A stretch of 64,000 nucleotides of DNA, from positions 2,480,001-2,544,000 of the forward strand of contig OZ251222.1 of the NCBI GenBank assembly GCA_965240325.2. The letters run 5' to 3'. Positions 50,266 to 55,250 of this stretch are shown here, in pieces (within the stretch, counting starts at the first letter, position 1; each line of letters begins with the position of its first letter). A program made the translations under genes and the position numbers. Below the pieces are notes generated by a model that saw only the letters and a program-made list of their open reading frames with translations, made no database searches and was not told the origin of the DNA. This DNA is from Rebecca billardiae RCC1528. Taxonomy: Eukaryota; Protista; Haptophyta.

Positions 50266-53200
50266 CTACTGGACCTTGTTGAGAATGTCCTCGGCCTGCG
50301 AGTGCATCGCACTCTCGGCGAGGGCGAGCAGCTTGTCAAAGCCGATGGCCTTCCACATGCGCTGCCACTCGTTGTCCACGGCCTTGGCGTCCAGCCCGTC
50401 GTGCTCGACGCGGTGCACCTGCTCGACACTCGCGCCGTACGGGTCGAGCCCAGCGGCCGTCGCGCGCGCGTGCAGCGCGGCCAGCTGCTCGTCCTGGTTC
50501 TCGGGCGTGCGCGAGAGGAAGTTGATCCCCTCGAAGATGCGCACGCCGCCGCGCTCGAGGCACTGGAACTGCAGCGCCTGCGTGTACTCGCCGCGCGCGT
50601 CCTTCTGCACGTCCACGATCACGTTGGGGAAGGTGAGCCCGAACCCGGACTCCTGTGCGGTCCAGGTGGCGGGCAGGCGGGCGGGCGGTTTGGGGGCGGA
50701 GAGCTCAGCTGGCGGGGTTGCGCGGCTGCGTGGCGCGCGGGCGCGCGGGCGCGCAAGCGCGCGGCGGCGCGCGCAACGCACCTGCAGCACGCCTGGCTTG
50801 GACGGGTCCACCTTGCCGTACAGGAAGTAGTGCGCGCCGTTGGCCGCGGGCGACTTGTCCCACGAGCGCGGCGCGGCGAGCGGCGCGGGCGCCTTCACCG
50901 CAAAGTCATCCACCCAGCGCTGCCCGTCCGCCGAGAGCTGGATGTCGAGTGTCGTGTCGTAGACCTCAGAGAACTGCGTCCAGTCGTGAAAGCCGAGCTC
51001 GTACCACCGCCCCTGGTACTTGGCCACGTCGAAGCCCTTCATCGACGGCTGCTGGATGTCCTGCACCGCCGGGCAGCCGCGCACGCCGTCGTCGAGCGCG
51101 AGGTTGTACGCGGTCAGCTCGCCGCGCCCGCCCACGCCCGCGGAGACGAAGCCGACGAACGCGGCGGCGAGCAGCGCGTTCGCCGCGGCGCGCAGCCGCG
51201 CGGACGCGCCGAGCGCGCCGAGCACGCCGACGTTCGCCAGCGCGAACGACGCGGGGACCAGCCCGCCGAGCAGCGGCCCGGGCCACGCGCCCGAGTGCAG
51301 CACCTCGGAGATCCACAGCGCCGGCTTGAGCAGAGGGTGCATGGCCGCAAAGAAGGCCCAGAACTTGATGGGTGCGAGGTCCGCGTCCATCGCGCCCGCG
51401 GCCCAGATGCGCTGCCAACCGTCGACCAGCGGGCCCCACGCGCCGAGGTTGGGGAGCGCGAGCGCGGCGCACGCGCCGGCGAGCGCGACGTTCGCCGCGA
51501 CCGATGCCGCGCCGCCCGCGCCGCCCTCGCGCGCCGCGGCCGCCAGCTCCTCCGAGCCGAGCGCGCGTAGCACGGCCAGTAGCCGGTCTGCGCACGCCGC
51601 GCGCTCCGCGGCGGGTACGAGCGGGTCGGCGGCGTTGAGCGTGAGGTGCAAGGCGCCGTCGACGGTGAGGCACGACCAGGGCAGCAGCGCGCCCGTCAGC
51701 GCGTGCGGCACCGCGAAGAAGACCGACTCGAGCTCGAGCGCGCCGGACGCGCCGTCCACCTCGTGCCGCGCGCTGCCGCCGTACACGCCCGCGTTTGAGA
51801 GACCCGCGCCGTACGCGCGGCCGAGCGTGAGCGGGTTGTCCGCCTCCATCTCGAGGAGCTTGGTCATCTCGAACGAGCGCGTCGCCCAGTCGAACACCAG
51901 CACCGAGTCGCGCACGAACGGCGACTCCTTCGTGAACGAGCGCACCTGCGCGGCGCTCTCGCGCGCCGCGCGCCACACGTCGCGCGCGGCGCCAAGTCGG
52001 CCGTCGGCGACCGCGGCGGCGGTCGTCCCCGCGCACGGCAGCACGACGTCGAGCGAGCCGGCCTGGCAGCACAGCGGCTCGGTGGCGGCGAAGCTGCCGA
52101 ACGCGCGCATGTCCAGCCCGAGGAGCACCTTGAGCGGGCTCTCCGCGCCGTCCGCCGGCCGGCAGAGCTCGGAGGCGACGGCCGCGGCCGCGGCGCTCAG
52201 CAGCGCACCCACGGTGACGCCCGCCTCGCGGCAGCGCGCGCGCAGCGCCTTGGTGGTCGGCGCGTCGAGGGTGCGGAACTCGGGGGCGGAGGCGCGCGAG
52301 GCGCGCTTGATCGACTCGTCCGCCGCGCGCTCGAGCAGCGGCGGCACGCTCGGCGGCAGCTCCCCCGCCGCGCCCTCGCCCAGCTTGCTCAGCAGGTACT
52401 GCTGCGTGCCGTGCTCGAGCGCGAGCAGCCCGGTCCCGCCCGTCTCCTCGGAGAAGAAGCCGACGGAGCGGGTGTCGCCGAGCACCGAGGCCTCGAGGCT
52501 GGGCGGCACCGCCGCCGCGCTCGTCTCGAGCGCCTCCGCGCCGCCCGCTCCGCCGCGCGCCTGCGCCACCGCCGCGTCCGCCAGGAAGGTGTCGAGCATC
52601 CGATTGGCCGAGACCTGGTCCGAAATCGCATGGTTGAACGCCCAGACCAGGCACGTGCGCGCGCGCGAGCGGAGGACGGTGAGGCGCCAGAGCGGGCCGT
52701 GCTCGCGCTCGAACTCGCCGAAGCGCACGTTGAGCTCGTCCGCGAAGCGCGCGCGCCACGCCGCCTCCAGCGCCGCCTCCTGCGAAGCGTCGTCGCCCTC
52801 GGCGCCGACGTCGCTGATGGTCACCGCGCGCGCGACGATGGACTCCGGTGTGGCGTCGGGGATCGGCGCGAAGCGCAGCGGGTTCGGATCGCCCACGCGC
52901 ACCATGTCGTCCCCCAGGAAGGGCAGCACGTTCGCCATCACCCCCGACGCCTGCACGGAGCCGATGCGAGTGTGGCGCTCGGGCTGGCCGTCGCCGACGA
53001 TGCGCCGCGCGAGCATGGGCTGCGAGGCGACGGCGCGGCGGGCGGCCTCGAGCAGCGCGGCGTCGGTCACGCGACCCTTCACCGTGGCGCACATCACGTG
53101 CGGCGTGTACGGCGTGGTGCACCCCTCCATCCGCCGAGGCGCAAAGAGGTTCTCCATGCTGCCCAGCTCGCGGTCCGTCGCCGGCTCTCGCGCGAGCGAG

Positions 53201-53358
53201 GCCGTCTCGCCCGCCGGCTGGCCGCTGGGCGTGCGCTCGCGGTCGACTGAGACGGCGCGGATGAGGCTGCGACGCGGAGCCACGCGCCGCACGCTCGCGA
53301 ACTCACCCCCGAGCACGAGGCCGAGGTGAAGCACCGACGTGATCACGAAGACCCCCAT
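50266..53358 (-). CDS. Fusion of a CoA-dependent HxxxD acyltransferase (condensation/alcohol-acetyltransferase fold), TM helices and a lipocalin domain (in-frame intron 50653-50781)
   Basis: GPLWRL, FNHAISD (HxxxD), CREAGVTVGALLSAA, DMR and LSNAG mark the acyltransferase. About 4 hydrophobic segments follow. The lipocalin has FDVAKYQGRWYE (SCR1) and NFLSRTP (SCR3). The N-terminus resembles a signal peptide plus an Arg-rich transit peptide. Confidence 0.8.
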   Translation of the reverse strand: MGVFVITSVLHLGLVLGGEFASVRRVAPRRSLIRAVSVDRERTPSGQPAGETASLAREPATDRELGSMENLFAPRRMEGCTTPYTPHVMCATVKGRVTDAALLEAARRAVASQPMLARRIVGDGQPERHTRIGSVQASGVMANVLPFLGDDMVRVGDPNPLRFAPIPDATPESIVARAVTISDVGAEGDDASQEAALEAAWRARFADELNVRFGEFEREHGPLWRLTVLRSRARTCLVWAFNHAISDQVSANRMLDTFLADAAVAQARGGAGGAEALETSAAAVPPSLEASVLGDTRSVGFFSEETGGTGLLALEHGTQQYLLSKLGEGAAGELPPSVPPLLERAADESIKRASRASAPEFRTLDAPTTKALRARCREAGVTVGALLSAAAAAVASELCRPADGAESPLKVLLGLDMRAFGSFAATEPLCCQAGSLDVVLPCAGTTAAAVADGRLGAARDVWRAARESAAQVRSFTKESPFVRDSVLVFDWATRSFEMTKLLEMEADNPLTLGRAYGAGLSNAGVYGGSARHEVDGASGALELESVFFAVPHALTGALLPWSCLTVDGALHLTLNAADPLVPAAERAACADRLLAVLRALGSEELAAAAREGGAGGAASVAANVALAGACAALALPNLGAWGPLVDGWQRIWAAGAMDADLAPIKFWAFFAAMHPLLKPALWISEVLHSGAWPGPLLGGLVPASFALANVGVLGALGASARLRAAANALLAAAFVGFVSAGVGGRGELTAYNLALDDGVRGCPAVQDIQQPSMKGFDVAKYQGRWYELGFHDWTQFSEVYDTTLDIQLSADGQRWVDDFAVKAPAPLAAPRSWDKSPAANGAHYFLYGKVDPSKPGVLQVRCARRRALARPRARAPRSRATPPAELSAPKPPARLPATWTAQESGFGLTFPNVIVDVQKDARGEYTQALQFQCLERGGVRIFEGINFLSRTPENQDEQLAALHARATAAGLDPYGASVEQVHRVEHDGLDAKAVDNEWQRMWKAIGFDKLLALAESAMHSQAEDILNKVQ

Positions 53359-53523
53359 CCTCGTTGAATCGTCGTCGGCGGAGTTCACGTCCGGCCGCCA
53401 GCCCACAAATTAGTGCGATGACAATTAGCCTGGGCTGATTTCTTTTCGCCGCCATTTTGCTTTTCTTCGGGCGAAAAATATTTAACGACGTGGTATGCGA
53501 AAAATATGCGAAAAATATGGATT

Positions 53524-54393
53524 CAATCTTTCATGAAAGATTGAAATGGCCATTGAAAGTTTCAGTATTTTTCATGAAAATTTCATGAAAAGTGAAAGAT
53601 TGTGAAGTTTTCACGTCCTGCGCTGCGGGAATTGATTTATTCCCGCAGCAGCAGTGAATAAAATGATTTTCCGCCCACCATGTCGGCGGCATCGCCCCGT
53701 GGGCGGAGCAAGGCCGGGCGCTACGGCGCGTGCGGCGCGTGAGGCGCGCGCACGCACGCGCGTGGCGCGCTCCACCTTGCTGAGCCCCGGCTTTTGTCCT
53801 GCTCCCTGGCTCCCTGCTGCGCGTCTCCGCGCCGCAGACTGACGGCGCCGACTACGACGAGCCGTGATCACACGGCGGCTCGGCGCGTGTGAGCCTGCTG
53901 TGTGAGCGAGCTCAGACGACCGAGGTCGAGGCTGACTTCGACCGGCTGCTGCAGGAGAAGCCTCAGCAGGAGCTCGAGGCTGAGAAGGCTGCCGAGCGCT
54001 TGCGGACGCTGACTCTGGACAACCGGGTGATGGATTCTACGGAGCCACGGTCGCCTTGGCGGTGCTCGGTGCTCTCGAGGCCCGAGATGTTGTTGAATGT
54101 TTCGCTGCAGGGTATATGAAGGGCTGACGGAAGGCATGCCGAGGATAGTAGCATGTTGCGCCAAGGCCGCATGCCGTGACAGTGACGATCCACGCGCTGT
54201 CGGCCAGCACCGCTGGCTTGCCGTGCGCAGCCGCGCCACGCGCGGCCATGCTGGCAAGGAATATATTTTCTGAGAAAATCACGTCATTTTTTATTCCCGC
54301 TGAGCAATCTTTCATGAAAGATTGGAATGGCCTTTGAAACTTTCAGTATTTTTCATGAAAATTTCATGAAATGAAAGATTGTGAAATATTTCA
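53524..54393. repeat. Pair of ~90-bp AT-rich palindromic direct repeats (53524-53613 and 54305-54393) bracketing ~690 bp
   Basis: CAATCTTTCATGAAAGATTG (a perfect 20-bp palindrome)…TTTCAGTATTTTTCATGAAAATTTCATGAAA…GAAAGATTGTGAA occurs twice. Confidence 0.85.
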
Positions 54394-54452
54394 GCCAGAT
54401 CCATAGCGAAAATGCGACGACGCGAGCGCGCATCTTGCTGCGTGGTCCCAGC

Positions 54453-55250
54453 ATGGCGTACGCCACGTCGCTCTCCGCGCTGGATGGCCTGATTGCAGCG
54501 GTCGCTGCAGGCAAGGTCGGAAGCGCCGCTTCAAACGGCGTTTGTGGCGTGCGCGCTCAGCCCAGCGCGCAGGCGAGTGCGCAGTCGGCCAAGCCAGCGA
54601 CAGGGAAGGGAGCCACGGCGGCGGGGGCTGGGCCTGCGCCGAAGGCCGAAGGGCCCCCGAAGGAGAAGAAGGAGAAGGCGCCCAAGGAGAAGGCCCCGAA
54701 AGCGGCTAAAGCGCCGAGCACGCCTGCGGCAGACCGCATCATCGACGTCTCCTGGCTCGACCTGCGCGTCGGCAAGATCCTCGAGGCCGAGCGCCACCCA
54801 GAGTCTGAGAAGCTCTACGTCGAGAAGATTGACGTGGGCGAGGCCGAGCCAAGGACGATCCTCTCGGGCCTCGCGCAGCACATCCCCCTGGACGACGTGA
54901 AGGGCGCACGCGTGGTCGTCGTCTGCAACCTCCCGGCCAGGCCGCTGGCCGGGATCCCATCGCACGGCATGGTGCTGTGTGCCTCAGAAGTAGATGCGCA
55001 GGGCAACAAGGCCAAGACGGAGTTCGTGATCCCACCTGATGCTGCCAAGGTGGGCGAGCGCATCAGCTTCGCCGAGTTCCCGGGCGAGCCAGAAGATGAG
55101 AAGAAAATCAAGAAGAAGAAGGTGTGGGAGGCGTGCGCCCCGGACTTGGCGACCAACGCGCAGGGAATCGCGTGCTACAAGGGCGCGCAGTGGACCACGT
55201 CGGCTGGCGCTTGCACCGCGGCAACTGTCAAGGGCGGCCCGATCTCATGA
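54453..55250 (+). CDS. tRNA-binding OB-fold protein (Arc1p/AIMP1-EMAPII-like) with a Lys-rich linker
   Basis: LDLRVGKI…HPESEKLYVEKIDVGEAEPRTILSGL…VVCNL.AR.LAGIPSHGMVLCAS…PP.A.VGER. Confidence 0.92.
   Translation: MAYATSLSALDGLIAAVAAGKVGSAASNGVCGVRAQPSAQASAQSAKPATGKGATAAGAGPAPKAEGPPKEKKEKAPKEKAPKAAKAPSTPAADRIIDVSWLDLRVGKILEAERHPESEKLYVEKIDVGEAEPRTILSGLAQHIPLDDVKGARVVVVCNLPARPLAGIPSHGMVLCASEVDAQGNKAKTEFVIPPDAAKVGERISFAEFPGEPEDEKKIKKKKVWEACAPDLATNAQGIACYKGAQWTTSAGACTAATVKGGPIS

Follow-up and report, generated by a model that had tools for sequence, protein, structure and literature searches.

Which function can be assigned to a protein in which an acyltransferase, a membrane-embedded linker and a lipocalin are encoded by one algal gene? 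This question is raised by a locus on the minus strand of a 64,000-nucleotide (nt) stretch of the genome of the haptophyte Rebecca billardiae RCC1528 (GenBank assembly GCA_965240325.2, contig OZ251222.1, positions 2,480,001 to 2,544,000; in the following 'the window', with all positions counted from its first letter). The locus is an open reading frame (ORF) of 1046 codons at 50266..53406(-) with the first ATG at 53358 and a TAG stop ending at 50266, such that the gene itself, delimited by the ORF, its sequence and full-length homologues, covers 50266..53358(-) with 1030 unspliced codons from ATG to TAG. P0001, a gene call on a genomic Logan contig, is identical to the window protein, and as this contig and the window are 99.9% identical along 5.6 kb, it derives from the same species. 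The encoded protein is composed, in this order, of a leader, an HxxxD acyltransferase domain, four hydrophobic segments, a lipocalin barrel and a helical tail. Judged by orthology, from which its activity is deduced, it is very probably the pavlovophyte (haptophyte) representative of XACT, which acetylates xanthophylls in the plastid on the way to fucoxanthin.

How fucoxanthin and peridinin become acetylated had long been a gap in their biosynthesis until the combination of an alcohol acetyltransferase (AATase) domain with a lipocalin was described as XACT, a xanthophyll acetyltransferase needed to make fucoxanthin (Cao et al., PNAS, April 2026; PMC13080032). PtXACT (Phatr3_J36932) was found among 39 candidate genes screened in Phaeodactylum, where the xact knockout lost fucoxanthin and accumulated fucoxanthinol, and recombinant XACT acetylates the allenic xanthophylls fucoxanthinol, phaneroxanthinol and allenoxanthin with strict specificity for acetyl-coenzyme A (acetyl-CoA) (Cao et al., 2026). 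Active orthologues originate from the eustigmatophyte Nannochloropsis, the brown alga Ectocarpus, the dinoflagellate Symbiodinium and the haptophyte Isochrysis, and the family, defined by its AATase (PTHR28037), to which a C-terminal lipocalin may or may not be added, and with orthologues called when BLAST against Domain 1 of PtXACT gave E < 1e-20, has turned up exclusively in lineages producing acetylated xanthophylls (Cao et al., 2026). A preliminary description of the window sequence had recognised a signal plus transit-like leader, an intact HxxxD motif, a multi-transmembrane block and a lipocalin barrel followed by a helical tail, all of which are borne out below, and had proposed a xanthophyll acyltransferase, which is what the XACT architecture has turned out to be by knockout and in vitro evidence (Cao et al., 2026). 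Its view that this architecture is not known from characterised proteins has been overtaken by the same publication. The window protein has in common with PtXACT the N-terminal AATase domain with HxxxD, the C-terminal lipocalin and a putative plastid-type leader, but differs by its origin from a haptophyte, for which no lipocalin was reported, and by a predicted in-frame intron in its gene. With the central function already published, the additions made here are modest and concern the distribution of the lipocalin, the membrane block and an intron-corrected gene model.

Domain content, pairwise E-values and phylogeny assign the window protein to the XACT family. In a word-index search, the closest named relative is the 1018 amino acid (aa) protein KFE25_002237 of Diacronema lutheri with 56% identity over 94% of the length, an uncharacterised protein of the same four-part architecture plus tail which is annotated as a hypothetical protein (condensation domain-containing protein in UniRef), and the same search retrieved a full-length relative from Pelagophyceae CCMP2097 with 39% identity. 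A broader alignment added, among the 120 matches listed, approximately 90 diatom proteins of about 1000 aa with identical part order, such as those of Nitzschia inconspicua (annotated as 'alcohol acetyltransferase'), Fragilariopsis, Pseudo-nitzschia, Cyclotella and Ditylum and complete MMETSP transcripts, with no Phaeodactylum protein among those 120, and an exhaustive profile search yielded 200 representatives at E <= 1e-30. The identity of the AATase domain to diatom, eustigmatophyte and dinoflagellate XACT-type proteins amounts to 25-29%. Using relatives of assayed XACTs as proxies for PtXACT, BLASTP with the AATase domain gave 2e-37 against Fragilariopsis and 4e-50 against N. gaditana, and with the whole window protein against Breviolum 2e-43 for the enzyme and 1e-25 for the lipocalin part, all of them beyond 1e-20.

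All fetched proteins were subsequently classified with our own hidden Markov models (HMMs) for the four parts, the AATase (A), the transmembrane block (T), the lipocalin (L) and the helical tail (H). The complete order ATLH is found in pavlovophytes, the pelagophyte and the diatoms; a class with AATase, lipocalin and partial tail but no transmembrane block (A-Lh) is formed by a Symbiodiniaceae cluster with a protein of Breviolum minutum, and the Nannochloropsis cluster, Tribonema, Fibrocapsa and Chromera possess the AATase domain only (A---). In the members P0188 and P0189 of the Symbiodiniaceae cluster, which includes the Breviolum minutum protein, the lipocalin is joined to the AATase via approximately 40 residues, with no membrane block and with both invariant cysteines of the barrel retained.

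In a carefully constructed maximum-likelihood (ML) tree of 42 AATase domains, which did not include the assayed XACT proteins nor a cyanobacterial outgroup and with which a quick tree of 71 rows agrees, the window protein, the D. lutheri protein and P0003 form a clade with support of 100/99, which is sister to a pelagophyte-type clade (100/96); both are placed together with the diatoms inside the group characterized by transmembrane block and lipocalin (100/99). Nannochloropsis, Tribonema, Fibrocapsa, Chromera and the Symbiodiniaceae are located on the opposite side of the tree. The names obtained from cluster look-ups were Nannochloropsis, Tribonema, Fibrocapsa, Chromera and Breviolum, with prymnesiophytes missing from them, and P0097 led to generic AATase clusters only. 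As the window protein, the D. lutheri protein and P0003 all carry lipocalin and tail, pavlovophyte XACT would possess the lipocalin domain, contrary to the statement that haptophyte XACT lacks it (Cao et al., 2026), a modest addition by which a full-lipocalin XACT is documented for a haptophyte class, the Pavlovophyceae. The grouping of the AATase domain with that of pelagophytes bears on the loss of the lipocalin in other haptophytes and on the proposed ochrophyte links of the haptophyte plastid. Nested in the diatom XACT clade (100/100) is, on a long stem, a clade of AATase-only proteins from metagenomes and MMETSP (P0057, P0076 and P0077), which may represent a lineage that has lost transmembrane block and lipocalin or the host of a tertiary plastid.

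Some points weigh against the assignment to XACT. The orthology has been established with congeners and relatives and not with the assayed XACT sequences; the structural model of the C-terminal part is of low confidence, with a mean predicted local distance difference test (pLDDT) score of 48 from seven sequences with the intron read through, and was used for a fold-level match only; and the lipocalin-less haptophyte XACT of the published work (Cao et al., 2026) implies that pavlovophytes could hold a second, AATase-only XACT which does the work, with the gene described here doing something related. In its fullest form, the latter consideration would turn the gene into a paralogue, an AATase-family acyltransferase that addresses another lipid or alcohol, for example in the formation of a sterol, lipid or other carotenoid ester. 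Besides the statement on haptophyte XACT, a paralogue would be in line with the lack of a labelled prymnesiophyte XACT clade in the trees and with the many substrates accepted by the AATase/condensation fold. It is nevertheless quite unlikely, as the pavlovophyte clade stands firmly inside the diatom and pelagophyte XACT-type group, no second D. lutheri homologue appeared among the matches listed in the name-bearing searches, and the family has been reported only from producers of acetylated xanthophylls (Cao et al., 2026), with Diacronema making fucoxanthin. Since the pigments of Diacronema (Pavlovales) are fucoxanthin, diadinoxanthin and diatoxanthin, an XACT of this alga is expected to operate in the diatom/haptophyte route, on allenoxanthin, phaneroxanthinol and fucoxanthinol.

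The catalytic half of the candidate XACT is an AATase/PapA5-like HxxxD acyltransferase domain of aa 60-599 (51562..53181, minus strand), as delimited by Pfam, a profile search of the PDB, the structural model, Foldseek and conservation. The HxxxD codons CAT for His243 at 52630-52632 and GAC for Asp247 at 52618-52620 are located exactly where the preliminary description had them, and both residues are invariant across seven full-length relatives. Pfam AATase (PF07247) matches with 24.6 bits above a cut-off of 22, with weaker matches to PapA_C and Condensation, an NCBIfam scan of the window protein found no match, and the profile search of the PDB retrieved 8s6l at E 5.9e-9. The model of the domain, built on a seven-sequence alignment, reaches a predicted template modelling score (pTM) of 0.81 and places HxxxD where two CAT-like lobes meet. 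With a Foldseek probability of 1.00 it was assigned to 8s6l, the TRI3 trichothecene 15-O-acetyltransferase, PapA5, WS/DGAT and condensation domains of nonribosomal peptide synthetases (NRPS), many of the latter being among the matches, which, together with a MEL acyltransferase, range in E from 2e-16 to 1e-10. By its predicted fold, the N-terminal domain thus belongs to the CoA-dependent HxxxD acyltransferase/condensation superfamily. Yeast-type alcohol acetyltransferases (PF07247) and the PapA5, TRI3 and NRPS condensation-fold enzymes resemble the window protein in the HxxxD motif and the two-lobed fold, with TM-scores normalised by the target of at most 0.71, but are only 10-18% identical to it, lack the membrane block as well as the lipocalin and use different substrates.

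The C-terminal lipocalin domain, which is interrupted by the intron, extends over aa 758-951 of the unspliced protein (50503..51087, minus strand), with the GxW motif at G783/W785, invariant across the seven full-length relatives, and LSRTP at 948-952. It is followed by the helical tail of about 75 aa (50269..50502, minus strand), predicted as helices in the model, kept in all ATLH proteins and partly in the dinoflagellates. On the sequence level, the relationship to known lipocalins is distant. Pfam Lipocalin_2 (PF08212) gives sub-threshold matches in four of the seven members (14.5-17.2 bits against a cut-off of 24, profile positions 1-38 only), which in the window protein fall on the GRWYE motif; with the gathering score of 24 not reached, membership of this family is not claimed, but only the fold. 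PDB profile matches of this part are all lipocalins, although weak (E ~0.4), and its feature neighbours in the Atlas are, likewise weakly, all lipocalin families. The low-pLDDT model was compared by VIA-align with 48,161 chains, the top 40 of which are all lipocalins (Z 12.5-6.6, model residues 160-392), led by Arabidopsis TIL (8wb2, Z 12.5), a Plasmodium lipocalin (12.1) and E. coli Blc (12.0), and including the lipocalin domain of violaxanthin de-epoxidase (VDE; 10.1). On the basis of this model, a lipocalin/calycin fold, defined by a barrel of eight strands, GxW and a helix at the C-terminus, is accepted for the C-terminal domain.

Common to the window barrel and Blc, ApoD, plant TIL and the VDE lipocalin domain, with Z of 10-12.5, are GxW after a short N-terminal strand and a barrel with C-terminal helix, while sequence similarity is limited to the first motif (E ~0.4) and, unlike in those proteins, the window barrel comes after an enzyme and a membrane block in one polypeptide and carries the conserved 75-aa tail. 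Cys762 and Cys933 are invariant in the aligned relatives, including dinoflagellates. Their positions, which resemble the pairing of an N-terminal with a barrel cysteine in Blc, ApoD and plant TIL lipocalins, would presumably suit a putative ApoD-like disulfide that connects the N-terminus to the barrel.

Between enzyme and lipocalin, the hydropathy profile reveals a hydrophobic block from aa ~613 to 744 with four segments at aa ~621-640, 665-684, 699-717 and 727-743 (51130..51498, minus strand), which are supported by hydropathy, conservation and an HMM and contain hardly any charged residues across 23 non-redundant relatives. Segment 2, together with the PGP that follows, is the best-conserved stretch of the linker (FWxFFAxxHPxLxPxLWISxVLH..PGP); it is also the least hydrophobic segment (median 1.48), with His and Pro residues that are conserved. 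With the block HMM, pavlovophyte, pelagophyte and diatom proteins were matched at a coverage of at least 70%, and no match was obtained in Symbiodiniaceae or AATase-only forms among the fetched proteins. The block, present in the window and the diatom proteins, is not described in the text on XACT, and the word 'transmembrane' occurs nowhere in its main text (Cao et al., 2026). The conserved membrane block is a further, modest addition to the description of XACT. With four spans, enzyme and lipocalin would face the same side; positive-inside analysis, in which a net positive charge is seen for the loop from segment 3 to segment 4 and for no other, gives no clear topology.

It is conceivable, but very unlikely, that the enzyme half is an XACT while the membrane block puts the lipocalin on the lumenal side of the thylakoid, such that VDE/VDL-type steps in the lumen are coupled with acetylation in the stroma. 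The less hydrophobic second segment with its His and Pro might not span the membrane and leave three spans, the only loop of net positive charge joins segments 3 and 4, the two invariant cysteines lie on either side of the barrel, like those of lipocalins with a disulfide bond, and the VDE lipocalin domain is among the structural matches. On the other hand, four nearly charge-free segments in 23 relatives favour an even number of spans with enzyme and lipocalin on one side, in Symbiodiniaceae XACT the lipocalin follows the enzyme directly with no membrane block in between, and for the Phaeodactylum enzyme the lipocalin domain was needed neither in vivo nor in vitro (Cao et al., 2026). The broader idea that the block is more than a passive anchor, with a lumenal barrel bearing the cysteine pair and a stromal acetyl-CoA domain constituting a trans-membrane device that links lumenal xanthophyll conversion to stromal acetylation, is speculative and unlikely. 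Role and topology of the membrane block could explain why the lipocalin looked dispensable in vitro.

The leader of about 60 aa (53179..53358, minus strand) ends where the enzyme domain begins with a conserved RxLGSxE and combines a signal-peptide-like h-region of aa 1-23 (hydropathy 1.82), Phe21 and a transit-like stretch rich in Arg, Ser and Ala, with basic and hydroxylated residues after Phe21. A Phe directly after the h-region is a hallmark of the bipartite signals of red-lineage complex plastids (the ASAFind motif) and is equally present in D. lutheri (ARA/F) and in pelagophyte and diatom relatives (e.g. CAA/F, ALG/F and ES/F). A plastid localisation of the window protein would be in line with these features, and plastid predictions have been reported for XACT proteins (Cao et al., 2026).

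Taken as an XACT, the protein would be brought by its bipartite leader into the complex plastid, where the N-terminal AATase domain, of a two-lobed CAT/condensation-like fold and with His243 of HxxxD as the putative general base, would transfer the acetyl group from acetyl-CoA to the 3-hydroxyl on the allenic end ring of compounds late in the route to fucoxanthin, namely allenoxanthin, phaneroxanthinol and fucoxanthinol. The four hydrophobic segments may tether the enzyme to the plastid membrane in which these lipophilic substrates reside, and the C-terminal lipocalin barrel may bind a hydrophobic ligand and serve as an accessory or regulatory part. That the enzyme is active, specific for acetyl-CoA and able to work without its lipocalin would be carried over by analogy from the characterized relatives (Cao et al., 2026).

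The gene model itself requires one correction. The preliminary description had taken the gene as one continuous reading frame, and indeed the ORF at 50266..53358(-) is open throughout, but it is open only because it reads through 129 nt at 50781..50653 which are almost certainly an in-frame GT..AG intron, the splicing of which is deduced from sequence features. This phase-0 intron (50653..50781, minus strand; CAG/GTGCGT...CACAG/GAG) corresponds to codons 860-902 inside the lipocalin domain, and the frame continues through it because its length is divisible by three and no stop is inside. Read through, it adds 43 residues rich in Arg, Ala and Pro between ..PGVLQ and ESGFG.., an insert which is missing from every homologue aligned, including D. 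lutheri KFE25_002237. The content of guanine plus cytosine (GC) at codon positions 1/2/3 is 0.81/0.84/0.81 in the intron stretch versus 0.74/0.55/0.96 in exon 1, and the stretches with the lowest difference between third and second position (GC3-GC2) of the whole coding sequence start at codons 859-863, that is at the start of the insert. Furthermore, positions 50652-50431 of the window align with L002:4332-4553, the locus of P0003, at 78.5% nucleotide similarity starting exactly at the proposed 3' splice site (50652), with DNA similarity to this locus detectable only in the second exon of the lipocalin. After removal of the intron, the mature protein would comprise about 987 aa.

That the fusion as such is an artefact of an acyltransferase gene and a membrane/lipocalin gene adjoining in one frame, with separate transcripts, is extremely unlikely: although the predicted in-frame intron indicates that open frames can here cross non-coding DNA, and metagenomic ORFs with transmembrane block and lipocalin alone exist, these ORFs are short, consistent with truncated gene calls, GC3 is 0.96 on either side of the junction and the frame stays open for 3.1 kb, the same part order recurs in three algal classes with more than 90 proteins, some of them complete ORFs of MMETSP transcriptomes, and PtXACT was expressed and complemented as a single protein (Cao et al., 2026). 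The ORFs in question, P0036, P0037, P0040, P0051 and P0054, are of ~430-520 aa with transmembrane block, lipocalin and tail only; they probably come from genes with introns that were called incompletely, but may also be stand-alone transmembrane-lipocalin proteins.

Upstream of the XACT-type gene, the window contains an AT-rich direct repeat at 53524-53611 and 54305-54390, with 67 nt at 96% identity and a 22-nt extension. Each copy harbours three TTTCATGAAA palindromes, and all six of these palindromes in the 64-kb window, where 0.1 are expected by chance, lie here. One copy is situated ~170 nt ahead of the start codon of the XACT-type gene and the other just upstream of a divergent plus-strand ORF at 54381-55250, and the repeat could be a shared promoter element or the remnant of a transposon. 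The divergent ORF encodes a lysine-rich low-complexity region followed by a segment which, from the translation alone, we take to resemble a tRNA-binding domain of the EMAP-II/Trbp111 type.

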